From Convolutriloba macropyga (lineage: Eukaryota): a stretch of DNA of 64,000 nt. The notes beneath the pieces were generated by a model. That model had not been told where the DNA came from, did not search any database, and worked only from the letters and a program-made list of their open reading frames with translations. The position numbers and the translations under genes are program-made. The DNA is taken from NCBI RefSeq assembly GCF_964194025.1, contig NC_134468.1, forward strand, positions 6,262,001 to 6,326,000, written 5' to 3'. How positions within the stretch are numbered: position 1 is the stretch's first letter; the number at the start of each line of letters is the position of its first letter. Shown one piece after another: positions 898 through 51,031 of this stretch.

Positions 898-3892
898 AAC
901 ACAATTACGAAAATTAGGCCAGAAGTCTCCATAAAATTAATGTCCTGAGAAAACTGACAGAAGTTCACAGTCCAATAATAGTAATATTCACTAATCCGAA
1001 GAAGAAAAATGAAACGTTAAGTGGATGCCTCTATAAGAGACATCGGAAATGCTCACATTCTCGTTCTTAAAACGCTAAAAAGCGTACGTCTGCGATATAG
1101 AAGTGGAAATCATCATTACCAAGCCCAAAACATGGGGAAGAACGACCTGCAAAACCAGGCTTATGATTTTGACAAATTTGAAAAGCAGTAAAAAGCCAGA
1201 AAAACTTTGAACCCAAATAATGTAGAGCTTTTACACCTATTACAATCCAAGCCCTTTCATTGCAAAAAAAAGAAATTCAGAAATAACAAATAAAAAACAG
1301 TCAGGAGAGGGAAAAGAAATATAGTTGAAACAGATTTGAACATGAGTTGCAAAACTTATGGCTGAGAATAAAGATAAAAGTGTTCCACGCAAAAACCTCT
1401 GATTATTAATTATATCCATATTTTAGAATAAATATCAAACAATTGTTCTGTGTTTAGAGCCCTATTACTTGTCTTTCATTGGCAGAGCTCTATAAAATTG
1501 TCCTTTCGATTAACTTTCAATATCAATTGAGGTTTATATCACTAATGTAAATTTTAAAGTTGAGTGCAAGAATTCCTTACAATTCGAGTGAGGCCGCAAA
1601 AACAATTGATTGCGAAGAACAACAACGTAGTCGCAAGAAATCTGACAGAATGAACGCTTAACTTCACAAAGTCCACAGCGTGTAGTTCGACAATGATTCA
1701 CTCCGTCAAATTTATATCTAAAAGAGAAGGACAAACAGACTTTCCGCTGCAAATTATCTACAAAAACCAAACGAAAAGATAAAATTAAGAAACCGAACGG
1801 TTAATAAGTCTCATTCATTCACTCATTGATGCGAGTTTTCTGTTTTCGAACAATCGTGTTTTCTGTTTAAGAATTAAATAAGAATAACAGTTGCTACAAA
1901 AAATAACTATAGAAACAGAGCCCTATTACAAAACTTTCAAGAAACAGTACAAATGCGGTTACGTATAGCGTAATCAATGTCATATACATGTTAAATAAAC
2001 AAAAAAGATCTTGAAAGAAAATAAACGTGAAAAAAACTAATGGCAAGCAATTAAAACCAGTTGGAATTTAGTAATTTTGAGGACTACAAACACCACTAAA
2101 AAAGGCGTTTGAAACTACAGAATGTCGATCAGAAGATTAACAATTGTCAACCAATTATTTTCTAAAAACCTATAAAAGCAAACGAACAAAATTTGGCCGC
2201 CGTTTTGTCTTGGTCCATCGGAGAAAGGACAACAGTTAGCAAAGTAGCAATCCCTTTCACTCTCCGATTTTCGCTTTGTTCAACAAAATGCGCAAAAGAT
2301 TTAGTTCATATGCTTCGACTCAAAACAAGATGCGATCAGTAGTTGCCTCAGCTTTAACTTCGCAGCAATTAATCACTGTTCTGGTTCCGTTCAAATGTTC
2401 TCCATGAGCTCATCATTCAAAACTTAATCTAGAAGACTAATGCAACCCTGTGTCATAGAATCTAAGTTCTGAACTTGGAACCAGTATCAATTTAAAAGAA
2501 AAATTAAATTCAGTTCTGAAAGATGGTATCCCAATAGACCTTTTGAACATGCCCAACTGTATTTTCAGTAAAAAAAAAGTGCACATACTTCTCCGATAGG
2601 AATTCTGAGAAGCGTGAATGTATATGTCTTTCACGTGTAAGCGCACATAATCGTATGCAAGAAACCCAATAACTAGTTTATTCAAATTCCCGCTAGCTTT
2701 TAAACAACCTCAAAACCCATTCAAGTTAAAGGTTAGGATTTAATTGATTAATTGATTTAAAACTTATAGGCACTTAACTTCTAATCACTAATAGGTCGTG
2801 TTTGCACCCAACGTGGATGACGCTAGAATGTAAGGTTCAGACTACTGTCACCCCAAAAGCAATGTTTAGTTACTTCTCTGCTCCAGTTTACTCCGAAGCC
2901 AACGTCAACATATTACCTTCATAGTATCATGATAAAAAACTTGTTGCATCAGTTTCCATTGAATTTTTAAATTTTGCTTAATGAAGGTAAAACCTATTTT
3001 ATGGCGTTATGTTTTAATAATGGAGAAGCGCTGATTGCAGATTCAAAAAACAATTAGCGCCCGAGAATTTCAACCGCAACAATTTCTAATATTTTTGGTC
3101 AAATGTGCATTTTCACCTCTCAGTACACTTGCGCTACATCTTCCTGAATATGAATCATTGAGCCATGGAAAAATTTAGATTGGCCTAATTGTTGTGATAA
3201 ACTTATTAAATAGAGATGAGCCAGCGAGGCATGGGAGATCTGATGAAAAAATTGCATGAGAGTGAGGGTCTTGATGAACCATCCAAGGAAATTTTGAAAA
3301 CCCTAATTGAAGAAAATATTGGAAAAAATGCACGAATTGCCGAATTGGAATCTGAGGTGGCACAGATGAAGATCAAAGTTAATCAACTCGAAGATATCAA
3401 TCAAAAGATTGCCTAATTTTTCGCAATCTACCGTTTAGTTCAAATGGAACCAACCTCTCAGATGTGATTGATCTTATTCAAAATGTGTTGAATGTCAACA
3501 TTGAACCGCGCGATTTAAAAGCGTGCCATCCGTTGGGCAGAGGATCGCCATTCAATCCACCACCAGTTATTGCGAAGTTCGTCTATTTCGACCAAAAGGA
3601 AAGAATCTGGACCAGGAACGGTTTGCTACGGAATTATAGGAATCCAAATAATGGAAAACCGGTTTTTTGATTATCGAGCGATTGAGCAAGTACGAAAAGT
3701 CATTGAAAGAGGAGGGTCAAGCAAAACAGTTAAAGGTTACTACTAAGAATTTGGCACCACTTGTTCAGATCGAGTCAGACGGGATGAAGCGATATCTTGA
3801 ACTGAACTCCATTCAAGATATTATTGAATTGCAACCAGTCGCTAGTAAAATTGAAAGGTTCAATTATCCAAAGAATCTACCACAAAAGCAAA

Positions 3893-6800
3893 GCCAAGTA
3901 TACACGACAACAGCGGGTTCGATGGAAGTCAATGAAATTATCTATAACACGCCTGTTCCAAAGCTAACAAACAGCCAACTTTTGCGCCTGGTACACCTTT
4001 ATCGACCAAAATGCCTTTCCTAAAGCGTATGTGTGACAATTTTGAGAACAGCGACTATCCCAATCTAATGGAGGAACTAAAAAGCAGGAGAGCTGATAAA
4101 GACGAATTGCTTGATTTTGTTATGGGTCTCTTAAGTGGTTCGCCGAATGCCAATGAGACTATTCTTGCTAATATTGAGGAACAGCCGTTTCGGAGCGAAG
4201 AGTGCTGAGAAGAGTCTGGAACATAAGAGTTCACCCCTTAGATTTAATAAAGCGACCAAAATTAGATCTGCATCAAATCACTTCATAATTTTACACTTAA
4301 ATACTAGATCCATTAAAAAACATGATGAAGAATTAGAGGCACTGATATCTTAATTTTGAGTCTCCGCCTTTTGTCATATGTTTAACAGAATCTTGTCTAA
4401 CAGTTAATGATGATCCGAATTTATTCAAGGTAGCAAATTACAATAATTGCTTGACAAAATCAAGAAGTGGTAGGGGTGGAGGTATTATGATCCAAATAAG
4501 TGATGAGGTGAACTTGATTGAGGAGCTGAATTGCAAATTAAATGAAAGTCTTTTGGTTCACTTGAAATTCGGAGAGTTAAAGATTGCTCTGTTAGTGGTT
4601 TGTAATCACCCCAAAATTAACAAGCAGAATATCATTTTTGAGCTCGATAAAACAGTGGAAAACATCAATGAAAATTATGACAGAATAATTGTTTGTGGGG
4701 ACTTAAACATCAACGTGCTAGATGAAAATCTGATGACGTCATCATATCTATCGACTATCCAACCAAATGGTTTTCAACTATGTTGTCGTGAGCCAGCTCG
4801 CATCAGCCGAAATACCTCGACTTGTTTGGATCACTTTTTCGTAAAGAATTTAAGGATTCAGAAAACTTTTGTAATGGAGGATAACAATTATTGCGATCAC
4901 TTTCCAATTGTGTTGGAATTTGAGAAGATTAGCAAAAGTTGTTAACCAGAAATTGGTTTTCGTGACACCAGTTTTTTTTAAAATCGTTGAGTAGATTGTC
5001 TTCTTTTCTTGATAACCTTTCTAAATCACTAGCGACAATAAGATACCAGGAAACGGAAAGTATAAACTGTGCTTTTGACAGATTTGAAAATACTTTTAAA
5101 GAAGTATTAGCAATGTTTGCACCATATCGGAAGTCAAGCAGGAATACAATTAAAAAACCTAACTGGTTTGATAAAAATATGAAAAATTTGATTTGCAAAG
5201 AAACCAATAACACAAGTCATGGAAAATGGACCGTCAGAGCAACCAAAAATTAGAGAAGTTTAAAGCACTACGAACTAAAGTGGAGAAAACAATCAAAGCC
5301 AAAAAGAATTCTTACTATGAGCAAAAGTTCTCAAAATGCATCGGAGACTCAAAACAAGTTTATAAATTTTTAAATGAGCTTAAGGGAGTTACTATTAAAA
5401 ATTCTAAAGTTCCTTACCAAATAAAAGATGGTAGAAGAGTTGATGATAATCTAGATGTTGCAAACGAGCTCAACACTTTTTTTGTAGGTATAGGACAGAA
5501 ACTAAAAGCAGACATCCCAAATGATATTTTTGTTAATCCTAAGGCTAATATTTTGCAGAGTATGTGGCTTTATGAATCAAATTGCAACGAAATCTTGCAA
5601 ATAATTGAGGATCTCAAAGAAAAATCATCTTCGGGAGTTGATGAGAGTAGTACGATTTTGATTAAGAAAACGGGTTTCTTAATTTGCAAGCATCTTGTTC
5701 ATCTCGTAAATAAATCTTTTAAAGACGGTAAATTTCCAAGTATTCTGAAACAAGCTACAACTGTCCCTCTGCACAAGGCAGGGGCGAAAGACGAGATAAA
5801 TAACTACCGACCAATTTCGCTTCTCATTGTGTGGAGTAAAGTTTTTGAACGCGTTATGTATAATCGAATTTATACTTACTTTGAAACTTTCGGTTTGTTC
5901 CATCCTAATCAATTTGGTTTTCGAAAAAAACAGCACTATTAATGCCATCGCAAATTAACAGAGACAGTTCGTGAGAGCCGCCATTGTCAGGTAGCCACAT
6001 TTTTTATTGACTTAAGAAAGGCTTTTGACACGATAGACCACCAAATCCTATTACAAAAGCTCGAACTATATGGTAAAAGAGGATTTTGCCTAAGATGGAT
6101 TAGTGATTATTTATTGGAAAGACAGCAATGTGTTTCAGTCAATAATTGCAACTCCAGCTGGCTGAAGTTAACTTGTGGTGTTCCACAAGGCTCGATTCTT
6201 GGCCCACTCCTTTTTTAAATATACATAAATGACCTTCCACACGTGTGCCAAGTCTTCAGAACTTTTCTATTCGCCGATGATACCAACTTAACAGCAGTCA
6301 ATAGAAAATTTTGAATAAATGCAGAAAGATTTGGTCAAAGAGAAATGGCTCAACGCCAAGTATACACGACAACAGCGGGTTCGATGGAAGTCAATGAAAT
6401 TATCTATAACACGCCTGTTCCAAAGCTAACAAACCGCCAACTTTTGCGCCTGGTACAACTTTATCGACCAAAATGCCTTTCCTGAAGCGTATGCGTGACA
6501 ATTTTGAGAACAGCGACTATACCAATCTAATGGAGGAACTAAAAAGCAGGAGAGCTGATAAAGACGAATTGCTTGATTTTGTTATGGGTCTCTTAAGTGG
6601 TTCGCCGAATGCCAATGAGACTATTCTTGCTAATATTGAGGAACAGCCGTTTCGGAGCGAAGAGTGCTGTGAAGAGTCTGGAACATAAGAGTTCACGCCT
6701 TAGATTTAATAAAGCGACCAAAATTAGATCTGCATCAAATCACTTCATAATTTTACACTTAAATACTAGATCCATTAAAAAACATGATCAAGAATTAGAG

Positions 6801-8819
6801 GCACTGATATCTTAATTTGAGTCTCCGCCTTTTGTCATATGTTTAACAGAATCTTGTCTAACAGTTAATGATGATCCGAATTTATTCAAGGTAGCAAATT
6901 ACAATAATTGCTTGACAAAATCAAGAAGTGGTAGGGGTGGAGGTATTATGATCCAAATAAGTGATAAGGTGAACTTGATTGAGGAGCTGAATTGCAAATT
7001 AAATGAAAGTCTTTTGGTTCACTTGAAATTCGGAGAGTTAAAGATTGCTCTGTTAGTGGTTTGTAATCACCCCAGAATTAACAAGCAGAACATCATTTTT
7101 GAGCTCGATAAAACAGTGGAAAACATCAATGAAAATTATGACAGAATAATTGTTTGTGGGGACTTCAACATCAACGTGCTAGATGAAAATCTGATGACGT
7201 CATCATATCTATCGACTATCCAACCAAATGGTTTTCAACTATGTTGTCGTGAGCCAGCTCGCATCAGCCGAAATACCTCGACTTGTTTGGATCACTTTTT
7301 CGTAAAGAATTTAAGGATTCAGAAAACTTTTGTAATGGAGGATAACAATTATTGCGATCACTTTCCAATTGTGTTGGAATTTGAGAAGATTAGCAAAAGT
7401 TGTTAACCAGAAATTGGTTTTCGTGACACCAGTTTTTTTAAAATCGTTGAGTAGATTGTCTTCTTTTCTTGATAACCTTTCTAAATCACTAGCGACAATA
7501 AGATACCAGGAAACGGAAAGTATAAACTGTGCTTTTGACAGATTTGAAAATACTTTTAAAGAAGTATTAGCAATGTTTGCACCATATCGGAAGTCAAGCA
7601 GGAATACAATTAAAAAACCTAACTGGTTTGATAAAAATATGAAAAATTTGATTTGCAAAGAAACCAATAACACAAGTCATGGAAAATGGACCGTCAGAAC
7701 AACCAAAAATTAGAGAAATTTAAAGCACTACGAACTAAAGTGGAGAAAACAATCATAGCCAAAAAGAATTCTTTCTATGAGCAAAAGTTCTCAAAATGCA
7801 TCGGAGACTCGAAACAAGTTTATAAATTTTTAAATGAGCTTAAGGGAGTTACTATTAAAAATTCTAAAGTTCCTTACCAAATAAAAGATGGTAGAAGAGT
7901 TGATGATAATCTAGATGTTGCAAACGAGCTCAACACTTTTTTGTAGGTATAGGACAGAAACTAAAAGCAGACATCCCAAATGATATTTTTGTTAATCCTG
8001 ATGCTAATATTTTGCAGAGTATGTGGCTTTATGAATCAAATTGCAACGAAATCTTGCAAATAATTGAGGATCTCAAAGAAAAATCATCTTCGGGAGTTGA
8101 TGAGAGTAGTACGATTTTGATTAAGAAAACGGGTTTCTTAATTTGCAAGCATCTTGTTCATCTCGTAAATAAATCTTTTAAAGACGGTAAATTTCCAAGT
8201 ATTCTGAAACAAGCTACAACTGTCCCTCTGCACAAGGCAGGGGCGAAAGACGAGATAAATAACTACCGACCAATTTCGCTTCTCATTGTGTGGAGTAAAG
8301 TTTTTGAACGCGTTATGTATAATCAAATTTATACTTACTTTGAAACTTTCGGTTTGTTCCATCCTAATCAATTTGGTTTTCGAAAAAAACAGCACTATTA
8401 ATGCCATCGCAAAAATAACAGAGACAGTTCGTGAGAGCCGCCATTGTCAGGTAGCCACATTCTTTATTGACTTAAGAAAGGCTTTTGACACGATAGACCA
8501 CCAAATCCTATTACAAAAGCTCGAACTATATGGTAAAAGAGGATTTTGCCTAAGATGGATTAGTGATTATTTATTGGAAAGACAGCAATGTGTTTCAGTC
8601 AATAATTGCAACTCCAGCTGGCTGAAGTTAACTTGTGGTGTTCCACAAGGCTCGATTCTTGGCCCACTCCTTTTTTTAATATACATAAATGACCTTCCAC
8701 ACGTGTGCCAAGTCTTCAGAACTTTTCTATTCGCAGATGATACCAACTTAACAGCAGTCAATAGAAAATTTTGAATAAATGCAAAAAAATTTGGTCAAAG
8801 AGAAATGGCTCAACGCCAA
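3893..8819 (+). repeat. Tandem duplication of ~2.46 kb (3893-6354 and 6355-8814) within the LINE
   Basis: Near-identical sequence at an offset of ~2460. GCCAA microhomology at 3893, 6355 and 8815. Confidence 0.95.
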
Positions 8820-10050: not shown

Positions 10051-10868
10051 TGCGAAATCAAAGTTTAATTGAGGCTTAAAGAAGTAAAATTCATTTTTAG
10101 GGATAATTTAGTTGGATACAACATGGTCACATATCTTACGCAAATAGTTTCCAAAAATAGCCCCCTGTTTTCAGAGATTAGGTTTTTTCTCTAGTTTGTT
10201 ATGGTGCATCCGCTTTTTAAACGATCTGATAAATTTTGGCAGCTTCTATAAGAGGGCCGAAATTTGCTATTTTATCAACAATGTCTTATTCGGTTCCGAA
10301 TACCTCTAAAATTTAGTTACGACTTCAATCACATAGATCTAATGAGTTACGGTTGTCACATTAACCACCATCAGAACTTCTTTGGAAAATTGATCCAATT
10401 GATTGAATTGATAATTGTTACAATGGCTTATGGTAAACTGATCAGTTTTGAGGGTTACAGTTTCACATTTAAGCGTAAAATTGACAGTTCGTGATATCTT
10501 CTGACGCTGTTAAGGGACTGCTTGCTTGATTTTCCTTAAACGTGTCTGGTCAGCATTGGATAGAGATCAAACATAGTGCACAAATTGAAAACAATCATTT
10601 GGACATCAATGTTGATGAGAACAGTGATAAAAAACAAGTGAACATAATTTATCAGTAGAGAGGAACGAAACTCATTTTCAGATATTTGCGTTTGGCCAAT
10701 TCATAGATTCTACGAAAATAATAGAAAAACAAAGCAAACTGCTACTTAGAAAAAACTGTCTTACATTCTTACAAGAAAAAATCAATCAATAATTGAATAA
10801 CGTATTAAATTTTTTTTTAAAAAAATAATAAAATTCTCACAAAACTTGTCAATTGAGTGCTGATGCAG

Positions 10869-11074
10869 GCTCATCAGGAGAATGCTACGACTACGTTGAG
10901 CTCTATGACGGTTCATTAATCAACTGGACACTGATTAAGATTGGTGGTAGAAGCAAAGCATGCGGCTTCTCGAACCCAACAAGGAGTAACTATGTCTCTA
11001 ATGGGAGCTGGGTTTTAGTACGATTCGTATCAGATCAGCTCAACAACTTTCGAGGATTTAAAATATCTTTTCAG
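10869..11074 (+). CDS. DEG/ENaC gene A exon: C-terminal half of CUB domain
   Basis: GSSGECYDYVELYDG...ACG...VSNGSWVLVRFVSDQLNNFRGFKISFQ is a typical CUB C-terminal half. Acceptor TGCAG, phase 1. Same 206-nt length as the paralogous exon 43955-44160. Inferred GC donor at 11075. Confidence 0.85.
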
Positions 11075-11659
11075 GCTGGCATCGGTTTCCTATCCTTCTT
11101 AAACTTTATGATTATTTCTGCAAGCCAATTAACGAAAAAGCCATTTCTGTACAATTTAAAGTTTTTCCTTTTGGCTCTTGTTTTCATAAACTTTTCTATG
11201 CGAGGAAAAGTTACTTTTTTAATGAAAAAAATATGGTCAGCTCGACCATTTGATCGAGCTGGCCATTGAAGATAGAATAGTTAAGTATTCCGACGTTCTC
11301 AGTTAGAATTTGATATGAGTTCCAGTTATTTCGAAAATTACATACCAGGTAAAAAAAATCTTTTTGACGCAAACGATACCCTTCCCAAACTAAAATTTTG
11401 CAACATTTAAATACAAAACCAATTTAAGCAAAAAATACTTTAATTGACTATCTAACACTAAAATACTAAAATGTCCCGATTTGTATTAACTCTTATATTA
11501 ATTTATAAAAGCACGAAAAAACTGAAAGTGCTCTGATAACACCACTAACTTGATTCAAAAGTAAAACGTTGACTTTGATCACACGTTTCTTCAATTCACA
11601 ATGTTAATTTCACTTGAACAGATGATAGTATGATCATGTTGATAACCTCTCACAAAACA

Positions 11660-12000
11660 AGTTCATTATTGTACCCACCCACCTTAGTGGAGGAGGAACT
11701 CTATGCTCAACTGGGTTTTTTGTTCAGTCATATTTGGCCGGTCGATATACTCATCGTAGAGAGTGGTATCATTACAAAGCCCGTCCAGCGTAGATTATAG
11801 AACTAAAAAGATTTTTTTTGAATTAGGTTTTTCTAAGGAGTTATCGAGTTTTATGAGCATTTGACTGATTTCAGTTCACATTTTCCGTATTTTTGCTCAA
11901 TTCATTGTCAATTTTGTTTAAAAATATGTTAAAAACTATCTATGGGTGCGAAAAATTGAGCTCAAAGAGGGGTTCGAATTAATTTCTGAATAAGAGCAAT
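11660..12000. repeat. Interspersed repeat (family Y)
   Basis: Similar to 14360-14560 (GGAGGAACT...CTCATCGTAGA...GTCCAGCGTAGA...GGAGTTATCGAG) and to 13885-14040. Confidence 0.7.
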
Positions 12001-12218
12001 TTAGGTCACGCAAAAATCAAGAATTCAAGGGTGAAAGAGTCGCTTGAAAAGTGAAATGTTCTACAAAAAAAAACGGTCAACAAACTTACATTAAAAGACA
12101 ATGACTGTTTCGAACTTCGTTTGAGAGCAATTAATCAGGAACTTTTAGCTTGAGAGAAATCTTTCTAATTGTTGGAAAAACCAAAGGGCATAAAGTAGAA
12201 TAGGAAACCGTTCCTAAG

Positions 12219-13210
12219 GCAATCGCGAAAAATCGCCGCCAGAAGCGAGAAATTACCACTGCCAACCAGAAGAGACCGCAGATTGTGAAGCATGAAAAAA
12301 ATCGACTTCTGAAACAAAGACCCCGCAGCTCAGCAGCAGTTTCCAAAAGAATTAAAAGAGGATCTTTGAAGGGTTTTTACTTTAAAAGAACAAATACAAA
12401 AAACAATTACAAAACTAAACGGGATTTGGACGCCATATATAGTGATACTTATGGGTACGATAATTATAACTATTATGATCACGGCGGTTATGAATACCAA
12501 CCTAACTATAACTACCAACCTAACTATGATTACCAACCTAACTATGATTACCAACCTAACTATGATTACCAACCTAACTATGATTACCAACCTAACTATG
12601 ATTACCAGCCTAGAGATTATTATCCAGCCAAAGACTATTACCAAAATTCTTACGACTACGATACTTACCATCATGATTATTCCGCATACTACGATTACCT
12701 AACTTATGAAGATTATGAAATAAAGCGAGAAGAATTCAACCCATTTGACCAATTTTTTAACATATCGGAGGACGACTACTTCAGTATGTACGACAGATCA
12801 AACCTTCTAGATTATTCCGACTTCAGACTTGCAGCTTTCTTCACCCAGGGTGAAATGAAGTATAACGGCTATCAGAAAGATGATTTCATAGCACAATGTA
12901 CTTTTGACGGCAAAAAATGCGGAGCAACTTGGTTTAAAACGTACCAAGACCCGTATTACGGAAACTGTTTCACTTTCAACTCAATCCGAGATAGAAATTT
13001 GTCACACCCAGTTTTCATTCGGTCAAGTGGCAAAACAGGGCAAGAGTATGGGCTAAAACTCACTCTGTTCTTTGATGTGGAAGAGTATATTGGTCTTCTG
13101 GGGCAGAATGCTGGCGGGAGGGTTCTGGTTTTTGACCCAGAAACACATGGCAACATCAGATCGCAAAGCTCGGCAGTTGGAGCTGGTACCAACACCTTTA
13201 TCTCCGTCAG
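12219..13210 (+). CDS. DEG/ENaC gene A exon: convertase-site linker, Tyr/Asp-rich repeat, and extracellular core (palm/beta-ball region)
   Basis: RRQKR, RIKR and KTKR sites; YDYQPN repeats; FIAQCTFDGKKC...DPYYGNCFTFN...GQEYGLKLTL are DEG/ENaC signatures. GT donor at 13211. Confidence 0.9.
12489..12614 (+). repeat. Coding 18-nt minisatellite, 7 units of Y[D/E/N]YQP[N/R]
   Basis: TATGATTACCAACCTAAC repeated in frame. Confidence 0.95.
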
Positions 13211-14359
13211 GTGATAACATATTCGAAATACATTAACAAGATCAGAAATGAACAACAGGGAACAAAAAACAGATAGAAAACGTCTTTAAAAACTGGTTAG
13301 GTAGACAAGTAGCAATAATCAACTAATGTTGTACAAACTAGCCAGAACAGTAACTTCAGCGCACTTCTTACAAAAAAAATGCGCTGAAACGAAAACAAAA
13401 AAAATGCGCTGAAACGGCGCTGACATCTCGACCCGGGATGCAGGGTCGTTCACAGTAAGGTGAGACGTATTGACAAAACTGAAGAACACTGGAAAACAGT
13501 CTTTGAAATACGCTGCAACATGTAATCTAGAAACTATAGAAAACTATGTTCGAAAAAGTCCGATTCGATCTGAAAGTTATTTTGATAAAAAACCCTAAAA
13601 TGCAAAAAAAAGTTTTTCACTTTCAACTTAGTACGAAAATTAATTTAACAAATAAAAGAAGTAAAATGACAACTAAACCGCGCAAACATCACCACTCGGT
13701 AAAAATCATAGCTTTCAAAAAAATTTAAAAACTGCCTTCCATGAGGATAAGGCATCTTATTTCAGTAGTACAACGCAATATAATAAAAGAAGTGAAACGC
13801 GGGCAAAAGTTAACGCTTAAAAAATTGGCACAATTTAATCTGTCAAAATATTCTCGCCTGTTTAACACTTTTGCTAAATCAATTTGAACATTTGACTGAT
13901 TTTATTTGTTTTAATAAACATTTCCCGCATTTTTGCTCAATTTATTATTGTCAGTTTTGCTTAAAAAATATGTTAAAAAATCAACTATGAGCGCAAAAAT
14001 TCCGACCAAAGAAGAGTTTGAATTAATTTCTGAATAAAAGCACTATCAACGAAATCAAATTGCTCCCCGCTAACGAAAATGAGAGATCAACTAGCTGCAG
14101 AAAAAATATTTTCAAATTTAAACGAAAACGCAACTAAAACTTAACTAATCAAAACTTATATTTCTATTTTCTATTGAAAAAAAAACAAAACTAAATAGAA
14201 ACTCTATCAGCAAATTTCATCTTAAAATTCTCAAAAAATTAAGCGCACTACATCCAGCGAAAGTCCGTTAAAAAGAAGTATATATCTTTTTGTTTTAAGA
14301 ACATTTAGCAACAGCTCCCATTTTGTCATCCAAAAAAGACATACTCTACAGAAATGATA

Positions 14360-21448: not shown

Positions 21449-22320
21449 AGAGAGAGAGAGAGACAGAGATATTCATTTTTATATGCTGAATGATCGTTGA
21501 TGAGTAAGCGAAAAAAGTAAATAGCGCAACGATATTTTCAGAGAATAGGAACGGGTAAAATTTTGTTACGAAGTTTGAGAAAAACAATCATATTTGTACA
21601 AATCTTGTTTTTTCCTATTTAAAAAGGTTTTAATTCCCCAATTAAATTGCTTTTCCAAAGTTTTGATCAACGTTTTTGCAACCCCGCCAAAATTGAAGCT
21701 GAATGCAGTATGTGACTTAACCCAATTTCATTGAGTAACATAAATTTTGTGTTCTCCCGTAAGATTTAACTTAGTGTACTAAAAACCTTTATTCCAAAAA
21801 CCATTCTGTGTAGCATGTTTCTCAGTTCATAAAACTTTAGTTTGCTATCAATAACAACGCCAAAATACTTCACACTAGTTGACTCTGCTATTTTCTTGTT
21901 GTCGACAGTCATAATGGCATTTCTTAAACTCTTCCTGCTGCTATATACTATATACAACCCTTGAAGCTGTTTGTTCACCACTAACTGGGACTTTGTAAAA
22001 TAATCGATAATTTTGTAGATGTTATGTTGTTTTATTTTCGACAAAAATTCTTTAATCATAGATGCGAAAACAAAAGCGTCGTCTGCATGCTGCACGACTG
22101 CACAATCTTCTATAATCTTCGCTAAATCGTTCAAGTAAATGTAAAAAAATTGAGGAACTATAATATTACCTTGTTGAACTCTTCGTTTCAAAGTTATCCA
22201 ATCGGATTCACGTCCGTTCAGGACAACTGTTTGCGTTATTTTACATAAACGATTCTCTATTATATTGGTGGCGTATTTGTCAAAACCTGTATTTTCAAGT
22301 TTCCGCAACAGTATTGCGTA
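21449..22320 (-). mobile_element. 5'-truncated decayed LINE (RT C-terminal part, 3' UTR and (TC)n tail)
   Basis: VQQGNIIVPQFFYIYLNDL...HADDA...VKYFGVVIDSKL are degenerate RT motifs. (GA)n run on the + strand at 21449-21468. Confidence 0.85.
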
Positions 22321-22478
22321 AAAGTTTTATATTTTCAAGTCTCATTAACTGTAGGTTAAGTGAGTCTGACGAAAACACTGAAAAATCTGGCACTAATAGA
22401 GAAGCCTTTAAAGATCAGAATTTTACTTCCATCTTCTCTGAAGTGGTTTCGTGATTTCTGATGTATTTCCGGAATTTT

Positions 22479-32916: not shown

Positions 32917-33050
32917 NNNNNNNNNNNNNNNNNNNNNNNNNNNNNNNNNNNNNNNNNNNNNNNNNNNNNNNNNNNNNNNNNNNNNNNNNNNNNNNNNNNN
33001 NNNNNNNNNNNNNNNNNNNNNNNNNNNNNNNNNNNNNNNNNNNNNNNNNN
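32917..33050. other. Assembly gap (N run)
   Basis: 134 N bases. Confidence 1.
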
Positions 33051-38375: not shown

Positions 38376-38548
38376 AAAATATAAGAAAATAAACAAAACC
38401 ACCATTTCAAAAAAGCATTATTCGAAAATTCTATTCTTTTACACTTCTATGGAAAAACAGATGGCTTTGGGGGCTTCCTAAATTGATCTTGACACGCACT
38501 TCAAATGAAACAATTAAAAATTAAAATCCTCATTGTTTTCCGTTTCAG

Positions 38549-38813
38549 CATTTTGGTGAAAAACTATCTGAAATACAACGTTGATATCAGTATCGAAATT
38601 CAAACGGCACAATCACTGAAATTCCCAGCTGTGACAGTTTGTAACGAGAACCCTCTTAGAAGATCTCTGATTGAAAGAATCAACAAATTCAACGACTTAG
38701 TGCTGCTCGATGACTATGTATTGAGTTATGTGTACTCGGTGGCAGAAAACTCAGACAGCAGTTTGGACTTTCCCGACTGTGCTGATGGTTATGATACTTG
38801 TAACAACACTAAG
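38549..38813 (+). CDS. DEG/ENaC gene B exon 3: post-TM1 FPAVTVCN motif and start of LDLa
   Basis: ILVKNYLKYNVDISIEIQTAQSLKFPAVTVCNENPLRRS...DCADGYDTCNNTK; GTATGT donor. Confidence 0.92.
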
Positions 38814-41528
38814 GTATGTTCTCTTGAATATCTGATCTATTCTGTTTTGCCCCCTTCTCTACTACAATATTACTTGGCCTACAGTTTAGATAGCCGGTTT
38901 GAGTTAATTGCAGATCAGTAATCGCGGCCATGCCTTTCATGCCCGGGGGGATGTAATCCGGAAATCGCGTGTCGGTTATCGCGGCTAAGCGCGCCCACAG
39001 ACCCGCCAGTCGGAAATTCTTTTCGCTTTGGATTCCAATTCGGCTAATTGTCATAGCATGACGTATTTTGTTCATTTGAGTTTCATATGGTATGCGCATA
39101 CGTGGAAAGTTAATAGTAGTCTTGGATCGGTTAATAAATTGCTTGCTTGAATTCTAATCAAGAATAGCCCCCCCCCCCCTGCAAAGGGGGATAATAGTTG
39201 AAAAGATCCTTATTTTCTGTAAGTTCAAACGTTCAACCGTTTGATTACCAATCAGTTGCCACTGGGTTATTGTTTTGATCATTTCTCAGGTCACTAGACT
39301 ATGTGTCCATTGGGGTCAGTAAATGAGGCCGAAAAATTAAAAAAAATCACATCCTGATAATTATGCTTTTTTCTGAAAATAGACAATTTGGTAAGAAGAG
39401 CGCTTATCTTGTTGGCTATACATACCCTGACGCGCATTGATACCCACCCCCAATTATACATGTTGTAGCCGGCACTTATTATGCACAATCTGCATTTACA
39501 AAATAATGATGCATCGAACTTTTAAAGTTAAGACATATACGGTAATTTAAATTTGCTTCTAATGTAAGCAAACAAAGAAAAATGCACGTTTTTACTATTT
39601 CTGCGATTATCTTTCATAGTTTTATGGCACAAATTTTTAAGACAACCGGAAACAATTCCGTCCAATCGTCTACAGGTGCCGGCAATATATCATGACTAAA
39701 ATAATGGATCTCTAAGTACCAAAACGTACATTTTGAGGGCCGCAAGCAGACTGGTTAAATCGTTAGAAACGATCCTTGCTATCTTAGAAATGGGAAACTT
39801 GATAGTGATCGGTTAGTATCTCATTTAATCGCAATCTGGGGGATCATCATGCGTATTGTAATTCTTCAGACACAGATACAAACTCTGAACACCGCTTCAA
39901 CAAATGTCTCGGCAATTTTTTTTATATAGAACTGCTAAGGCTTGGAAACGACAAATATATACAAGACTTTTGTGCACCATCAAAAAAGAAATTTTTGGTA
40001 CTTATTGACTCTATTTTTATAACCATAGTCCGTAGAGAATGAACGGAATTCGCTATCAATCAAATGTAAAAAAGATTCAAATCCTATTGTAGAAAAAATT
40101 AAAATAAGTATTACTCAATTGGCACCAACTTTATATGCCAAGAAATAAGAAATATTATATATGCACTAAGTCAAAACTACCCATTATCTTACATATTAAA
40201 TTCTAAGCCAGTCAATCATAAAAAAAAGATAACTCCTATGCATAACCAACTCTCCATGCGGTCTACTTGAAGTCAAGGTAGCAGCAAGAACAATTGACCT
40301 CCTCAACGAGCACCAGAAGTAAAAAAAGTCTCGTAAAAATCAGAATAACGTATCTACTACTTCTACGATCAGATAGAGTCTTTGTTAAAATGTATATGTA
40401 AATTGCGCATAAACAGAAAAAGCGTGTATGAAATGCAAACAAAAGCGATTCAAAAGCAATTTATTTTAAATTAATCTAGTACTTAGCAGCTTTGACTAAA
40501 TTCAAAGAAAAAAAAATAAAAACAATGTTGATTTGCGTATAAATCTTTCTAACTACCCTAGAAGCAAAAATTGTCGATTATTCTGATGAACAAGGAAAAA
40601 ATAAAAAATCACAATAAATACTTATATTACATGTTAAAAATTATAAAAACACCCAAAAAGTAAAATCAACGTCACAGCCTACTCTAATAAGACGCGTTCT
40701 GCGAAAAAAGTGACAAAACCCAGACATTTGATGAATTGAGCTCAAAAAACAAGTGACGGCTGGTTCTTTGCTGCGTGCTTCGCTGTTGATGGGCTCGCTT
40801 ATAACTTGTACTAATTTTGCTCTCAATATTACTATTAGCAGTGAACTGCCGCGTATTTCCTTCAGTCAATTAAAATTCCGAAAGATCAATTTCAATCAAG
40901 CAAAACGTAAAGATTCAGGCGCCAAAGAGTTGAAGTGGTCAGAGGAAAAACACCAGCCGAACTGGAAAAATTGAGATACCAGCCAGTCTTGAGAGCAACT
41001 AATTGCAAGATCAATTAAAAAATAAGCGTTTGCTTTCTATTATCGTAGCTGAGAAAGACAGAACATCAAAGAGAAATTGCAAAAAGACAAACCTATATCA
41101 ATTAAAGCTGCCGGATATTTTTTTCCTCCTAGGAAAAACAAACTTCAATCGGTCACTGCAACCTCTATGTTTGACAAAGTACTCTTGAAATCTAAGAATT
41201 AAATATATATCGTCTGAAAACAATCACATTTTGAAGAACCAACAAGTGAAAGTATCTTAAATGTGACGAGCACCATTTTTCAAATCAACGAGAGGGGAAA
41301 ACCACTTGGACAGCCAAAAAAACGTTAATTAAAAAACTGTCTGCAATTATTAGAGAAATCTGAACTAACCCATGAAAATGATTAGGGGAACTATTTAACT
41401 TTTGCTTAAAATGGTTGCTACGAACTCTGTCATAATAATCAGATGCCCCGCGGCTTGAACACTTTCTGAATTCCAAAAATTAACTAACTTTTGTAGCATG
41501 TATTGGCTAAACCTATCAAATTTTTTAG

Positions 41529-41655
41529 GTTTGTATTCCTGAAGAATGGATCTGTAATGACATTGACAACTGTGGTGATAACAGTGATGAAGAGTTACCC
41601 TACAATTGCGCTGAAATACAGGAGGAAAGGGAAGCTAACAGAACCGAAGAACAAG
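41529..41655 (+). CDS. DEG/ENaC gene B exon 4: LDL-receptor class A repeat
   Basis: VCIPEEWICNDIDNCGDNSDEELPYNC completes a 6-Cys LDLa repeat with the acidic DxSDE Ca2+ motif. Canonical AG/GT; phases fit. Confidence 0.9.
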
Positions 41656-42050
41656 GTTAATATTATTTCCGTACGTCTGCAATCAAAAGTAACCGACCAA
41701 TAACGCAAAATTTTGATCAGGAAAGAGACTGTGCATTTAGCCTGCTTTGACAGTTGAGAGGCCGCTAGTTGACTAATTGTACTTTCAAACCATAACCATT
41801 CATTTTTAATGTTAATTGATTTACATTGAGAAAAAGACAACAAAATTTGTGTTCAATTTTGATTTGAGGAGTAGCAAGGTAAGTCAGTAAATTGATAACT
41901 TTTAAATTTTCAGTTATTTGATAATACTCAATTTTATTATTTGCAAAAACAATTATGTTAAAAAACACCTCACTGGTAATTGCGACTAGAGCCATAGACA
42001 AATCTAGGGGAGAAACAAAAAGATCCGAAATATTCTGTTGTATTTTGCAG

Positions 42051-42199
42051 GAATTTGCAACTGGCCCTACATCCAGTGCCCAGAGGAGGAGTACTGTGCT
42101 GAGAAGTGTGACGGGGATTCAGAGTGTACAGTAGACAAAGGATACGATGAGAGTCTAGAAATCGGATGCCCCGAGAGCTCATGCTCCACAACACTAGTG
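42051..42199 (+). CDS. DEG/ENaC gene B exon 5: second, divergent LDLa-like repeat and CUB start
   Basis: ICNWPYIQCPEEEYCAEKCDGDSECTVDKGYDESLEIGC (6 Cys, CDG and DE motifs), then SCSTTLV. Donor is either GC (42200) or a weak GT (42197). Confidence 0.82.
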
Positions 42200-43459
42200 G
42201 CACGTTTAGTGCATTATCTCTCTTGCTTGGTATCAAAACCAAATTGAACAGAAGAACAATATTAATAAGATTTCTTCACCTAATGAAGAAATAGTTCGTA
42301 GTAATGGTCAATAATAAAAAGAAAATTTGTGAATGATTCCTTCCGTGCGCATAATTTCCCCACCGCATAAAGAGTTATCATCTCACGCTGCTCTGTAAGC
42401 TATTGCAGAAACGTTTGCCTTCATACAAAAATCGTCATCAAAGCATCATACAAATGCCACAATTCAAAGCAAAAAGACGGAAAGGGGAAAACATGAGTTT
42501 TCAGATCAATGTTACAAAATGAAGAACCTTCCGGAGTAATTGCAACTCACTCCGAGAAAGATGAAAACATGCACGAAAATATTTTCAACTCACAGTACAT
42601 ATGCTTAGTCGTTAAAATAACTTTAATTGGTCCATATTCAAGAAAAATGACGAAAGTACTTATTTTTTTAAAATATATAATGGATTAATACAAATCTTTG
42701 TTATCAAACTTTGATTCGGAATCAAAAGTTTTTGCTCATTAAAAGTTCAAATAAGGAAGTGTTTGTTTTGTTGAAGAATTCTTCATTCTTCTCAATCGCT
42801 CTCTATAACATCAGTCTTGTTCTTCTTAAATTTCAGAATTCTTCTCTTTTCAATCTTCATTGAACTCTTGAAAATCCAGATAGAAGTACTTATGGAGAAA
42901 ATTCAGATAGAAGTTGGCCAATTTCCTAAAAGAGCAAGAAATTAAGATCCACGTGAAATCAGTACAACTTGATTATAACTAAATATTTTGTTCAAGTTTT
43001 TGCGAAATTTAAAAGATTTATGATCAAGGTAAACAGATTTCACTAACTGCTTTCAAGGAAAACAGGCAAACTTCTGTCTGGATTTTGTCCGTAAGTACTT
43101 TTGTCATTTTTTAAGAACGTAGACAAATTAAAATTATATTGATTTTCATTCGACTCACGTAAAACTCAAGGAAAACGTAAATCGGAATGTTACTGAAAAA
43201 CTTCTTCTAAAACGGGTACTTTACTAGGTAATTTTTTCATTTGATCGCTTAATTTTGCTAACAAAACTAGTTGGCTAAATTCTTTCAAATTGCACAAAAA
43301 GTACGTTCTTAAGAATATTTAATCCCAAAAAACTCTGATTTGATATGAAAATACACTTGAGTCAAGCCAAGTCATAATTGAGCAAAAGATTCGCAAACTT
43401 ACGAAAAGATCAGCCTGGTAACGAAAGGCAATAAAAACAGTTGATTTGATTTCTTTCAG

Positions 43460-43598
43460 GCAACGACAACTGAACAAGATGTGACCTCTCAAAATTGGCC
43501 AAACCACTATGCATCTAACACAGACTGTGTCTGGATCATAGACGCAACCGGCAACGGTGATCAAGTCAGCTTGACATTCAAAGAACTCAGCACTGAAG
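43460..43598 (+). CDS. DEG/ENaC gene B exon 6: N-terminal half of CUB domain
   Basis: ATTTEQDVTSQNWPNHYASNTDCVWIIDATGNGDQVSLTFKELSTE matches the CUB pattern (SPNYP..Y..N..C.W.I...V.L.F..F.LE). The 3' end is inferred from a GA donor. Confidence 0.85.
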
Positions 43599-43954
43599 GA
43601 ATGCAGCAATTGGCATACATTTAAAAACAAAACTTAAATTAAGGAGGCCACAATTGATAATTTTGTTTAAGCGAAGAATAGAAATTGCTGTCTCACAAAT
43701 TACTACAGTCCTGATCACAATGTTGATCAATGTATAAACAAAAAACAAATAGAACAGCTATTCTTCATTTTTAAGAACTCAAGGGGCAAAAATGGTTAAT
43801 GCGTTCTTAACTAATCATAATTTTTATGGGTTGAAAAGAGGTGGTATTATCAATTGCAAATCAAGGCACAAAAATTAAAAATTACAAACCAAGGCACAAA
43901 GGAACAATCTAATTCGACATTGTTCCTTAATTACTTTTTCAATTGCTTGCCAAG

Positions 43955-44160
43955 GCGAGCCTGGTGACTGCAATGATTACGTTGAACTTTACGATGGAGA
44001 ATTTGTCAACGCAACGGTTATCAAAATTGACGGACGCAAACGAATATGTGGATTTTCGAACCCATCAACTACAAATTACATTTCTACTGGTAGTGTTATG
44101 CTCATTCGGTTCGTATCGGATGAATTGAACAACTTTGAGGGATTCCAATTGGGATATCAG
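43955..44160 (+). CDS. DEG/ENaC gene B exon 7: C-terminal half of CUB domain
   Basis: GEPGDCNDYVELYDG...RICG...STGSVMLIRFVSDELNNFEGFQLGYQ, collinear with gene A exon 10869-11074. Inferred GC donor. Confidence 0.87.
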
Positions 44161-45126
44161 GCTAGGATCGGTTTCCTTTCATTAAATGTTTCACCCAATA
44201 TTCCAATACTCACTCCATTTTAAACCCAATATTCAAAATCTTAACAATATTCTCCGTTCTTGACCTATAAAAAAATGTCTCATAGCACAGCAAAGTATTC
44301 AAAAAATGAATATTTGTTAAGACACGGGAGCGTGAAGGCTGCTACTAACGAGTACCCTCCAAAATGGGGGCACAAATGGTAAGAACCTAACAATCTTCTA
44401 GCAAAATCCACTCGCCCTTTAATTATTTACGTCTTTTTAGCTCTTGAACAACTAATACTTTTAGCCCATAGGAATAAAATACGACGGGAGACTTAGCATT
44501 TCTTTCGCACGCACGTGACATTGTCTCAATAAAGAGTTAAAGTACAGTCTGATTGTAGCTGAAATCATGCAGGCTCACATGTACTGAAAAAATCAGTCGC
44601 GTTAAATTTTGAAACTAAACATTGACATATTTGGAAAGCGTTAAACTCTGCTCAAACAAATTCCTTCACGGCATATACATGCCACTGATCAACAGTCTGG
44701 CTCATTATGCAATGATGATCATCAACGAAACAGAACCCAAAAAATAAAAGAACGATATCTGAAAACAATGCAAACGCCAAACTATTGACAAACTATTGAC
44801 TCGAGAAATAATTGTCGGTCAAATATTTGAACTGATGAAATTGCATATAATCAGTACTGCTCTGAACAAAAACTGTTATCGTATCTGCTTTAACATTCAA
44901 CTCATACAGCTTAAGAAATCAAGATAAACTCTACTTTCCAATAACTTGCATTAAATTGCCGCTAAAAAATTAGAGAGCAGTGAAATTTAATATGGAGCAC
45001 ATTTGATTTCATATACGTCAGCAGCAATTGATGTCCATGTCGTATTCTAATTCGAAAAACGCCGTTCGCGGGCTGCTGGTATAATTCGATTTGCTGCAAA
45101 AAGTAAAAGCAGCAAACCGAAGAAAA

Positions 45127-45254
45127 TGGGGACAAAACGTTGATGAGTTTTCGATTCCCGGGAACTTAGTACGATGGACTCTGATAGATTAGTCTATCAG
45201 AGTCCATCGTACTAAGTTCCCGGGAATCGAAAACTCATCAACGTTTTGTCCCCA
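45127..45254. repeat. Perfect palindrome (62-bp arms, TTAG loop)
   Basis: TGGGGACAAAACG...CTGATAGA-ttag-TCTATCAG...CGTTTTGTCCCCA. Confidence 0.95.
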
Positions 45255-45475
45255 GTTTAGGTCGATAACAATTCTGCCGTTAAAGAAGTATCCATTGAAA
45301 CATAAAAAGTTAATTCAAGCTGCGCCAGCGGGCGCTTAGACGGGTAAACTATGTCAATTTTTCTTTCGCCTCATTAATGACGAATTTAACCGCCTTTTGT
45401 AAATGCATTTTTTAAAATTAGTTGTGCTAAATTGCTTTATGACTTTACGGTACAAAGCAAAGTGACACCAGCTTT

Positions 45476-48400
45476 AGAGAGAGAGAGAGAGAGTCAATTT
45501 ATCCTCGCCCAGTTAATACGACGAAAATTATATAAACACATTTTAAACATCAATCAACCATTATTTGAGACAACGGAATTAATCATCAAACGAAATTATC
45601 AACAATTTAACATCTTTAACATCAATTGCCTGAAAAATAGGCCAGGGAAGGACAAGCAACGAGGAGGTCGTTAGACCTGCTTTCCGGCGCGCCCTACATT
45701 TTTCAAACTGATAAAATTATTAGACAAAAACTCAAAAGACAGCAAAAATGTGAAAACATACTTTTGCCATCAAAAAATTCTTAGGAAAAAAACTTATCAC
45801 AATAAAGCATAGAATCCAACATTAGCATCCTCCTGCTGCCACGAACACTTAGCACTGTACTTATTCTATTGCCCCATTTGACCGTAAAAGTTCATGTTGC
45901 TACTTGTTCTATAGTGTCAGTTTCGGAAAGAATAAATGTCAAAAACTATATTTAGACATGAAAAATTTGAACTTTTGAGTGCAAAAAAGAGCCCGCGGTG
46001 CCTTCCAGGAAGGCACCGGCCAAATTTTGGCGTAGAATTCAGCAAAATATTAAGTGATTTAGTATGAGCTTTGGTTCACCTGTAATCCTTGCAAAAGATT
46101 TTTCGAACAAGCTCATCGTTCGCAAGTATGAAAGAATCTCTTAATAGATGGTAAAAACCGGAAACTTGCCACATGCTTGCCTTAATCTCCCCTTCTGGGA
46201 GAAGACTTTGCATTTTCAGCAGATTAAACAGAAGAGAAGAAGAGAGGTACGGTGACAAATGGAGTTTCTCTCCATTTTGATTTCGAGTTTGGGATTTTAA
46301 GTAACCTTAAGAGATGCACGTCTAGTGGACACACCTGATCTTTCCAATTGAAACATATCGTTCAAATACTTTTCTGTATGAAGCCCGTTTAATGATTCAA
46401 TCTATTGAATCATTAAATGCATTTTAAGTATTTCAATTAAAGTATTTTTTCTGTAGCTGATACACAACTAAAGAACAAAAGGTGCAGCATCCGTAAACCA
46501 GTACGCCGTACTGCATAACTGGATTCATTACGCTTTTATAGTTTTCAAGTAACTGGTACGCGTGGAACAAAGTGCCTTAGCTTCGAGATTACACCGCATT
46601 GCCCGCTCAGTCTTGTAAAAACTAATTTTATGTGCGAACGGTAGGAAAACTTTGAATCAACTGTTATACCAAGATATTTCCATTCATTTTTCATAACAAC
46701 ATAATGATATTCAATTTTAAACTGATGACTGGAAGCACTTGTTTTATTATTCAATTGAAAGGTTTTTGAGATGTTAAGCTTTACTTTATTTGCATTTAGC
46801 CACTTCGTTATCTTTAGAAGGTCGGCTTGAATTTCTTCACTCGAACAGTTCAATCCACATATATTAGTGTCGTCGGCAAAGAGATAAATATCATTTTGAG
46901 AGCAAACATTTGGCAGATCATTAATGTAAATCAAAAATAAGAGTGGCCCAAGGATGGATCCCTGAGGAACGCCACAGTTTACATTTAACCAATTTGATGA
47001 CACACCCATTTTTGTATTTTTTTGTGATCTTTCAGATAAATCGCTTTTAAACCATTTTAAGGCAGTATGACGAATACCATGTAGTTGCATTTTGTAGAGT
47101 AAAATTTGGTGATCAAATGTGTCAAAAGCCTTCTTCAGTTCAAGAAGAAAGTTTACGGTTTCTACTTTAATTCTCCTTATTTTTTCAGTTAATTCTGCCA
47201 ATGCATCAATTGTTGAATGGGTTTTCCGGAATCCCAATTGCTTAGAATATAGTAGATTAAAATTCTCCGTGTACTCACATATTCTGGCGAACATTGCTCC
47301 CTCATATTTTGCTCCAAACCATTAGAAGATATTGGTCTATAACTATTTTCACCCAACCGAGAACCATCTTTGAATAGAGGAATTACCTTAGCTTTTCTGA
47401 GTTCTTTTGAGAAGCAACCTTCATTGAAGGATTGATTTATTAGTGAAGCTAGATAGCAAGTGATCACAGATCCTGCAGTTTTCACAATTATGTTATTAAT
47501 TTCATCTTCACGCGATGATGTTTTCTCCGGAAGAGATTCTATGATTCCTTTTATTTCATATTCGGATACCGAACTCAATCTAAATGACATTTCAATGTCT
47601 CTAGGATAAATTATTGGTTCAGCGGGAATACTTTGCTGTATGTTTTTGCCAACATTAAAAAAAACTCATTCAATTTTTCCGCAACTTCAAAAGCGGATGG
47701 ATTGGAATCAGAACTCAAAAAACAGAATTTCAATTTAGGAATCATAGTATTGATAAGAGTCTTTCCATTGAGCTCATTTAGAAGATTGAATGTTTGTCTT
47801 GAGTCTCCGATACAATTTTTGAACTGCTTCTTATAATACGCTTTTTGCTTGCTTCATGCTCTTTTCGAGTCGTAACCGAATGTCTTTAAATTTCTTTAGC
47901 AAAGTCAAATTTGATTTATATTTTTCCATTTCTTGTGCGTCAAATTACGTTGAGTACGTAGATTTACGAGATTGTTATCATACCATTTTGGTAGAAAACT
48001 TTTTCTAGGATGAATTTGCTTTAAAGGTGCATATCGATCAGTAATCGAAACAAAAACCTTATGAAACTCGTCGAAAGCCCTGCTTCTACAGCAGTAAGTT
48101 GTTTTGAGCGGATTAGTTAATTCGTGATTCAAAACGATATTGTATTCCTCAACCTTATCGCGGTGATGGAGAAAAGAAGTATCTCTTATAAACTTACTAT
48201 TGGTTTCAGTTTTTCCTTGAATATTCCATTTGAACAACACAAGATAGTGATCAGAAAAACTTTGATGCTCAAGAATAATGCAATCAGAGAGCAAGTTTTG
48301 ATAAATTAAATGGTCAATGCACGACACTGAACGATCGGTGACTCGAGTTGGTTCGTTCGGTAGAAGCCGGAAACAATTGGAGTTGATTGTATTTACTTAA

Positions 48401-49800: not shown

Positions 49801-49994
49801 CAACAATTGGGCTAAAATTAGAGGGCTCTTGGCTTGCCCTTTTTTGAGTATATCGTTGACTTAATTTTAAGATATATTAAATCATCATAACCATTAAACT
49901 ATAAGAATTTTGGTATCTAAGTAGGTACTGAAATCAACTTTGTGGAAAATGCACAAATGATTTCAAGTAACTTGATGAGGAAACCGTTCATTAG

Positions 49995-50698: not shown

Positions 50699-51031
50699 GT
50701 AAGATCCACAATCGTTCATACATTGATCAATTGTTGATAAATCCAGTTCTATCTTTTTTCAAGACTGCCCAACTTTTATCACAAAATTTAAATTCTAATC
50801 TTTTACCACAAAATTATCAACTATATTTATAGATCAAGATCAGGCAAAAAAACGAGAATTAGGTTGAATTTGGGCAAAATGAGCACACAGGTAAATTGTT
50901 TCTTTACCTGTGAGATTTTCTCGTGCAACGAATAATGAGATTTATGCCAAAATTCAAAAGCAAATCTAAAAATGCACCAGTTGACAATTAAAACAGTTAA
51001 GAAAACAATTAACCAGACTTTCCTTACATAG

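Follow-up and report, generated by a model that had tools for sequence, protein, structure and literature searches.

The linker behind the CUB domain in three tandem acoel DEG/ENaC genes: a predicted convertase-processed tract and its shared octapeptide

Within the DEG/ENaC superfamily, ENaC has been described as unique in being activated through the release of embedded inhibitory peptides, with active cores consisting of an 8-mer from the α and an 11-mer from the γ subunit, and its GRIP domain, which is sensitive to proteases, is situated between finger helices α1 and α2 (PMC6197857). The inhibitory tracts of the α and γ GRIP domains are freed by furin/prostasin double cleavage (PMC6197857, PMC8791634), and the paired cleavage sites that permit this arose within vertebrates (PMC8791634). 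Peptide-gated DEG/ENaCs also exist, such as FaNaC, which is gated by FMRFamide, and HyNaC, which is gated by Hydra RFamides, the ligands being amidated and derived from separate precursors (PMC9234716, PMC9949801). A literature search returned nothing relevant on DEG/ENaC channels that carry CUB or LDLa modules. Outside the superfamily, PDGF-C and PDGF-D are latent growth factors that lose their N-terminal CUB domain when cut at a basic hinge site, and PARs and the adhesion-GPCR Stachel are tethered-ligand receptors.

The window analysed here is a 64,000-nucleotide stretch of the Convolutriloba macropyga genome, to which all coordinates below refer. It belongs to a locus with three complete tandem genes in the order C, A and B, which were delineated by tblastn with intronless relatives from the same genome as queries and share an identical exon plan, running from TM1/α1 through two LDLa exons, a CUB domain spread over two exons and exon 6 to two more core exons. 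The main features are as follows.

17-32 kb upstream of the window: paralog C (tblastn)
From 6.3 kb upstream of the window to 23257, plus strand: paralog A (tblastn)
38493-52231, plus strand: paralog B (tblastn)
10868-11074, plus strand: last CUB exon of A, ending ...GFKISFQ (Pfam CUB match, tblastn)
11075-12218, plus strand: GC-AG intron of A before exon 6 (GC donor and AG acceptor read)
12219-13211, plus strand: exon 6 of A, 331 amino acids, holding the basic tract, the Tyr-rich acidic linker and the beginning of the channel core (translation)
43954-44160, plus strand: last CUB exon of B, ending ...GFQLGYQ, with GC donor (Pfam CUB, tblastn)
49995-50699, plus strand: exon 6 of B, 235 amino acids (translation, Pfam)

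The Pfam profile ASC (PF00858) matches exon 6 of both A (residues 162-330, E = 1.9e-16) and B (E = 1.5e-16), the core part comprising finger helices α2/α3 and the β-ball. In a full-length relative (L011) the match extends across residues 76-848 (E = 2.8e-66), with the LDLa and CUB domains nested inside it, and a PDB search with a family member returns ENaC, ASIC and FaNaC; judged by these profile matches, the A/B/C family is a DEG/ENaC family. The cores of the three paralogs share 83-87% identity and have dN/dS of 0.05-0.10, so that all three are under purifying selection. The family tree, in which rows L010, L024 and L026 were mis-extracted, served for two points only, the A/B/C clade (support 92/95) and a separate single-site clade. 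Sequence runs over the window form contigs that span introns and exons alike with zero splice joints and therefore represent DNA; no variant was found within 12360-12383 in these DNA runs.

Exon 6 of A and of B begins with the linker under study, whose elements, all read by translation, are listed here.

12237-12248, plus strand: site 1 of A, RQKR, canonical furin-type
12249-12422, plus strand: basic tract of A between first and last polybasic sites, 58 amino acids, net charge about +17 (61 amino acids and +19 when counted from the overlapping KNRR motif)
12348-12359, plus strand: site 2 of A, RIKR, immediately ahead of the cassette
12360-12383, plus strand: cassette of A, GSLKGFYF
12384-12389, plus strand: dibasic KR of A behind the cassette
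12411-12422, plus strand: distal site of A, KTKR
12423-12740, plus strand: acidic Tyr-rich linker of A, net charge about -19, with 33 Tyr
50013-50024, plus strand: site 1 of B, RQKR
50025-50129, plus strand: tract of B between first and last sites, 35 amino acids, net charge +4
50082-50093, plus strand: site 2 of B, KVKR, with Lys at P4
50094-50117, plus strand: cassette of B, GTLSKFHF
50118-50129, plus strand: distal site of B, RTRR, canonical furin-type

In A, AIAKNR leads into RQKR, which lies 10 residues into exon 6 and about 12 residues past the last CUB strand, and is followed by a 37-residue basic stretch closing with RIKR, the octapeptide GSLKGFYF, KR, an 11-residue stretch closing with KTKR and a long acidic Tyr-rich segment. 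Exon 6 of B has AITSFS, RQKR, 23 residues closing with KVKR, the octapeptide GTLSKFHF and then RTRR, behind which a short Tyr-rich acidic segment follows; the basic residues of its tract cluster in three discrete motifs, and the octapeptide is its sole hydrophobic/aromatic cluster. The corresponding region of C reads RIKK-GKLKGFYS-RYTR, within a tract (RKKR...RYTR) of 50 amino acids. The descriptive claims of an earlier note on this DNA are thereby confirmed: the motifs RIKR-GSLKGFYF-KR (12348-12389) and KVKR-GTLSKFHF-RTRR (50082-50129), the three basic sites per paralog (RQKR, RIKR and KTKR in A; RQKR, KVKR and RTRR in B), the 96-amino-acid difference in length between the two exons (331 versus 235), and the lack of an amidation donor, no Gly standing behind the final Phe. 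About 41 of the 96 extra residues are supplied by an A-specific 18-bp tandem repeat at 12489-12612 (6.9 copies, 95% matches), which encodes (YDYQPN)n in the acidic linker. The reading of the cassette flanks as furin sites holds for RIKR in A and RTRR in B, which are canonical, but fails for F-K-R in A and KVKR in B, and neither RIKK nor RYTR in C is canonical; the KR at 12384-12389 is not furin-type because P4 is Tyr. Site 1 is canonical furin-type in all three paralogs and stands, in A and B, about 10 residues past the CUB domain.

It is this first site that stands out across the family. In an alignment of 66 relatives, 45 of which have residues at the CUB position, a strict R-x-[KR]-R motif occurs within 30 residues past the CUB end in 24 of the 45, against 0.55 expected from 1000 composition-matched shuffles (maximum 4), an enrichment of about 40-fold. 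Its distance to the CUB end is fixed while the linkers are otherwise unalignable, and the site is present in about 20 paralogs of the C. macropyga genome. The P1'/P2' positions behind it hold D/E/Q/N and then I/V/L/A, a pattern that resembles real convertase substrates. A second polybasic site follows site 1 by 58 amino acids in A, 35 in B and 50 in C, and by 31-66 in at least 11 further relatives (L004, L005, L006, L008, L029, P0008, P0153, P0002, P0006, P0028 and P0071); behind the distal site, the members with paired sites carry an acidic Tyr-rich segment with a net charge of -3 to -26. P-domain (PF01483) matches in the C. macropyga genome mark, as far as domain content tells, genes for kexin/furin-type convertases. 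With its motif, its position in a luminal segment modelled as disordered, and convertases encoded in the same genome, site 1 is a predicted furin/proprotein-convertase substrate.

The place of the insert within the channel can be read from structural comparison. Searched against the PDB, a full-length family member matches human ENaC γ best, with its residues 76-166 aligned to γ 51-132 and residues 510-852 to γ 247-555, so that the insert takes the place of γ residues 133-246; the linker, lying within the ASC domain between TM1 and TM2, is luminal/extracellular. An AlphaFold2 model of full-length P0153 (mean pLDDT 81.7, pTM 0.70) has helix α1 at residues 104-128, LDLa, LDLa and CUB at 137-362 and the next finger helix from 473, with pLDDT <50 for residues 367-469, a range that takes in the tract with its two sites as well as the acidic linker; in the AlphaFold2 models about 100 residues behind the CUB domain are without secondary structure. 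When exon 6 of B was modelled alone, residues 1-63, cassette included, had pLDDT 35-41 and no secondary structure, the absence of docking in this partial-domain model weighing little. Since the P0153 model and the γ alignment both put the insert between α1 and α2, its position is that of GRIP. By Pfam and AlphaFold2, it is not the GRIP β-sheet (strands P1-P4, disulfide) but consists of LDLa, LDLa and CUB followed by disordered residues.

The likeness to ENaC α and γ thus extends to the superfamily, to an insert between α1 and α2, to paired polybasic sites around a poorly conserved tract some tens of residues long, and to the fact that the ENaC active core is also a short peptide (8-mer in α, 11-mer in γ). 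The differences are equally clear: the acoel insert is an LDLa-LDLa-CUB module plus disordered tract whereas that of ENaC is a GRIP β-sheet, the acoel tract leads into an acidic Tyr-rich segment and has no similarity to LPHPLQRL or RFLNLIPLLVF, and its cleavage is predicted and any inhibition by it hypothetical. Because position and site pairing are common to both but GRIP fold and tract sequence are not, the family is not an ENaC-type GRIP channel by membership; by analogy, it may nevertheless work like one. Any likeness between the two would be convergent, given that ENaC cleavage is described as unique in the superfamily and as a vertebrate innovation.

The octapeptide itself fares less well than the sites around it. 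The earlier note had described it as conserved in a poorly alignable linker; that it is shared by A and B stands, but conservation beyond residual homology does not. A and B agree in 4 of 8 residues, and in the comparison of A, B and C, which with three sequences has low statistical power, 3 of 8 columns (G, L, F) are invariant, the 8-column cassette window comes 14th among the 69 windows of the alignable part of the linker, and cassette pN (0.21-0.41) is on the level of the whole linker (0.37-0.43) and exceeds that of the core (0.064-0.085) four- to fivefold. Linker comparisons were made by pN and by an allele pair of C, synonymous sites being saturated between the paralogs (pS about 0.8). 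The second allele of C, 97-98% identical and found in another public assembly, carries GTLKGFYS where C has GKLKGFYS; between the two alleles the linker (108 aa) differs at 5 amino acids, including one within the cassette, and the core (159 aa) at 0, and the probability of all five changes landing in the linker is about 0.011.

Wider searches agree with this picture. A DNA pattern for KR-G[ST]LxxFxF gave 51 matches in the 1.18-Gb genome versus 62 for the reversed control, and the nine matches outside A and B that were inspected all lie in ORFs of 14-38 amino acids; the genome-wide pattern search found no further octapeptide copy and no multi-copy or repeat-type precursor. The conservation in further paralogs that the earlier note had proposed as a check was not borne out, the octapeptide being degenerate in C, missing from about 80 other family matches in the C. 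macropyga genome and, as G[STK]LxxFx[FS], present in 0 of 56 channel-type relatives besides the C allele (best 150 matches from a 1.8-billion-protein library). Among these best 150 matches the closest relative outside A/B/C is P0008, 62% identical to the B core, in which RVKR is followed by a 48-residue tract, KVKRKRR and a DY repeat, the octapeptide being absent; together with P0153, L004 and P0002 it belongs to the paired-site relatives in which no such patch was found at the distal end of the tract. A word-indexed search of other assemblies with the B exon returned three matches, namely the C allele and two more distant relatives, and no A or B orthologs. As far as these sequence comparisons reach, the octapeptide similarity is residual likeness among three tandem duplicates, and the cassette is not a conserved island in any strong sense. 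Some constraint on the patch is possible, since A, B and C all retain G-x-L-x-x-F-[YH] with basic flanks despite pS of about 0.8.

We therefore lean towards regarding the octapeptide as a hydrophobic patch that is restricted to this lineage, under weak constraint and placed close to the distal end of a processed, disordered basic tract, in a family in which selection would act on the protease-site architecture rather than on the octapeptide. The channel would run from TM1, β1-β2 and α1 through LDLa, LDLa and CUB to site 1, the tract, the distal polybasic site, the acidic Tyr-rich segment, α2, the core and TM2. Being extracellular/luminal and disordered, with convertase motifs at both ends, the tract should meet furin-like enzymes of the secretory pathway, which would nick the subunit at site 1; cutting at the distal site, where present, would excise the tract, as in ENaC α and γ. 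Both halves of the subunit would be held together through their shared fold, as in ENaC, and GSLKGFYF or GTLSKFHF would depart within the tract or as a small tract fragment. The luminal linker, the conserved site 1, the convertases in the genome and the GRIP-equivalent position make the ENaC analogy reasonable as far as processing is concerned, which upholds one half of the earlier proposal that processing frees a gating or blocking peptide; its other half, the octapeptide as the functional unit, is not upheld for a sequence that varies and is absent elsewhere. A specific role for the octapeptide alone is unsupported. The further suggestion that cleavage separates the LDLa-CUB part from the core does not hold either, as the LDLa-CUB module would remain joined to TM1, β1-β2 and α1 after cleavage.

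PDGF-C and PDGF-D likewise have a basic protease site straight after a CUB domain, cleavage at which alters activity, but they are soluble growth factors from which the CUB domain is released, whereas the acoel CUB part would stay on TM1, β1-β2 and α1. By analogy with PARs and Stachel receptors, a cut at a basic site could free a new N-terminal end (G-[ST]-L...) to act in cis; those receptors belong to another protein family, however, and the second basic site right behind the acoel octapeptide would detach it. A role as tethered ligand is unsupported.

The main alternative, a closer parallel to ENaC in which G-x-L-x-x-F-[YH]-[FS] docks in the finger/thumb region to keep the channel closed for as long as double cleavage has not released it, the patch playing the part of the α-ENaC 8-mer LPHPLQRL, appears unlikely to us, although several observations speak for it. 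The tract is placed topologically as the ENaC GRIP tract is (PMC6197857), is bounded by paired polybasic sites and is comparable in length to the 20-40 aa tracts of ENaC, while the patch is the lone hydrophobic/aromatic cluster of the B tract and has basic sites directly at either end in all three paralogs; its poor conservation is shared by the ENaC inhibitory tracts (PMC8791634). Against it stand the disorder of the region in both AlphaFold2 models, the divergence of the cassette at linker speed and its difference between alleles, the paired-site relatives P0008, P0153, L004 and P0002 without such a distal patch, and the insert's lack of a GRIP fold. Disorder in AlphaFold2 is compatible with docking, ENaC tracts also being partly disordered in cryo-EM (PMC6197857). 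A complex prediction of the 35-aa B tract against the α1 piece, the exon-6 core and the exon-7 thumb as separate chains gave a score of 0.02 (mark 0.34), which, for a prediction made on protein pieces and without the supplied alignments, speaks neither for nor against binding. It is rather improbable, too, that the paired sites are cut and the excised tract keeps the channel closed until its removal, with G-x-L-x-x-F-[YH]-[FS] as docking core in the A/B/C clade; we give a similarly low weight to the associated view that such a system was built beside an LDLa-LDLa-CUB receptor module in place of the GRIP domain.

At the other extreme, the linker would have no processing role and would be a flexible charged spacer, the cassette being leftover similarity between tandem duplicates, which we consider doubtful; we are equally sceptical that the basic motifs merely follow from Lys/Arg-rich composition or serve polyanion binding, whether to the acidic Tyr-rich segment or to glycosaminoglycans. 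Dibasic motifs do arise easily in a tract that is, in A, 36% Lys/Arg (21 of 58), and the divergence of the cassette at linker rate, the predicted disorder and the constant presence of an acidic segment behind the basic tract fit a spacer as well. Yet the roughly 40-fold excess of site 1 over shuffles, at a fixed distance from the CUB domain in linkers that are otherwise unalignable, is hard to square with a pure spacer, and so are the confinement of the basic residues of B to three discrete motifs and the convertase-like P1'/P2' residues of site 1.

Least likely, to the point of being very improbable, is the release of GSLKGFYF or GTLSKFHF as a diffusible, neuropeptide-like agonist or modulator of the same or other DEG/ENaC channels: basic residues do stand on both sides of the octapeptide in A and B, and FaNaC and HyNaC, of the same superfamily, are gated by short peptides with an aromatic C-terminal residue, but those ligands are C-terminally amidated and come from separate secreted precursors, whereas the acoel octapeptide has no amidation donor, is encoded in single copy within a membrane protein and not in a secreted multi-copy precursor, so that one peptide per subunit would be released once, occurs genome-wide at the chance level of the control, has the flanks RIKK and RYTR and a last Phe changed to Ser in C, and is conserved in no other relative (56 database relatives, about 80 own-genome matches), to which it may be added that F-K-R is no furin site and that channels use the constitutive pathway. 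The octapeptide as self-encoded ligand or inhibitor, as the earlier note had put it, is unsupported for a peptide that is found only in three tandem paralogs, degenerate in C, variable between alleles, absent from P0008 and predicted to be disordered.

Returning to the processed tract, paired convertase sites with an excisable tract at the ENaC finger position, next to a CUB/LDLa module, would, if true, mean that this principle of regulation has originated independently, and the acoel channel family would offer a tractable system for what makes a tract inhibitory. What the analysis adds is a quantitative test of the cassette, a count of site 1 across the family and a place for the insert in the channel structure. 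The result for the octapeptide is mostly negative, and it should not be regarded as a conserved ligand; the initial proposal is thus partly supported, the octapeptide sequence being real and the processing idea reasonable on family-wide evidence, with the self-encoded ligand idea unsupported.

Several observations on the surrounding linker deserve mention. A short hydrophobic motif lies just past site 1 in several relatives, as TFSDLKLM in P0008 (residues ~100-125), SFTDLVLV in P0153 (370-385), DLTDQILAI in L008 and SKSDLSEI in B (window 50025-50060), and the P2' residue of site 1 is an invariant Ile among A, B and C; this proximal element, more widespread than the octapeptide, may on sequence grounds have the stronger claim to being a conserved part of the tract. 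Behind the distal site, Tyr stands beside Asp/Glu (DYDYDY...) in nearly every family member, a classic tyrosine sulfation context, with examples of the acidic Tyr-rich segment at window positions 12423-12740 and 50130-50210 and in L004, L010, L012, L029, P0008 and P0017. The basic tract and this oppositely charged segment might mask each other until cleavage.

As regards the sources of the relatives, the ENA assembly ERZ25071359 (L071, contig ctg21750) holds a 97-98% identical copy of C and, in addition, P0008/P0151, the closest relative of the A/B/C clade, which has no close counterpart in the C. macropyga genome, its best match there being L004 at 54%; either a related species or a mixed sample is the source of that assembly, or the gene is absent from the C. 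macropyga genome or unassembled in it.

At the locus itself, the intron before exon 6 opens with GC instead of GT in both A (11075-11076) and B (44161-44162), and one run of 134 N between genes A and B (32917-33050) represents an assembly gap or a masked stretch. Pfam matches to AP-endonuclease and reverse transcriptase reveal fragments of non-LTR retrotransposons in the introns of A and B, at 3652-8800 (plus strand), 21769-22326 (minus strand) and 46400-48900 (minus strand), the first of which represents a tandem duplication (about 2.46 kb, 93-100% protein identity) and sits in the 11-kb intron that splits the CUB domain of A.
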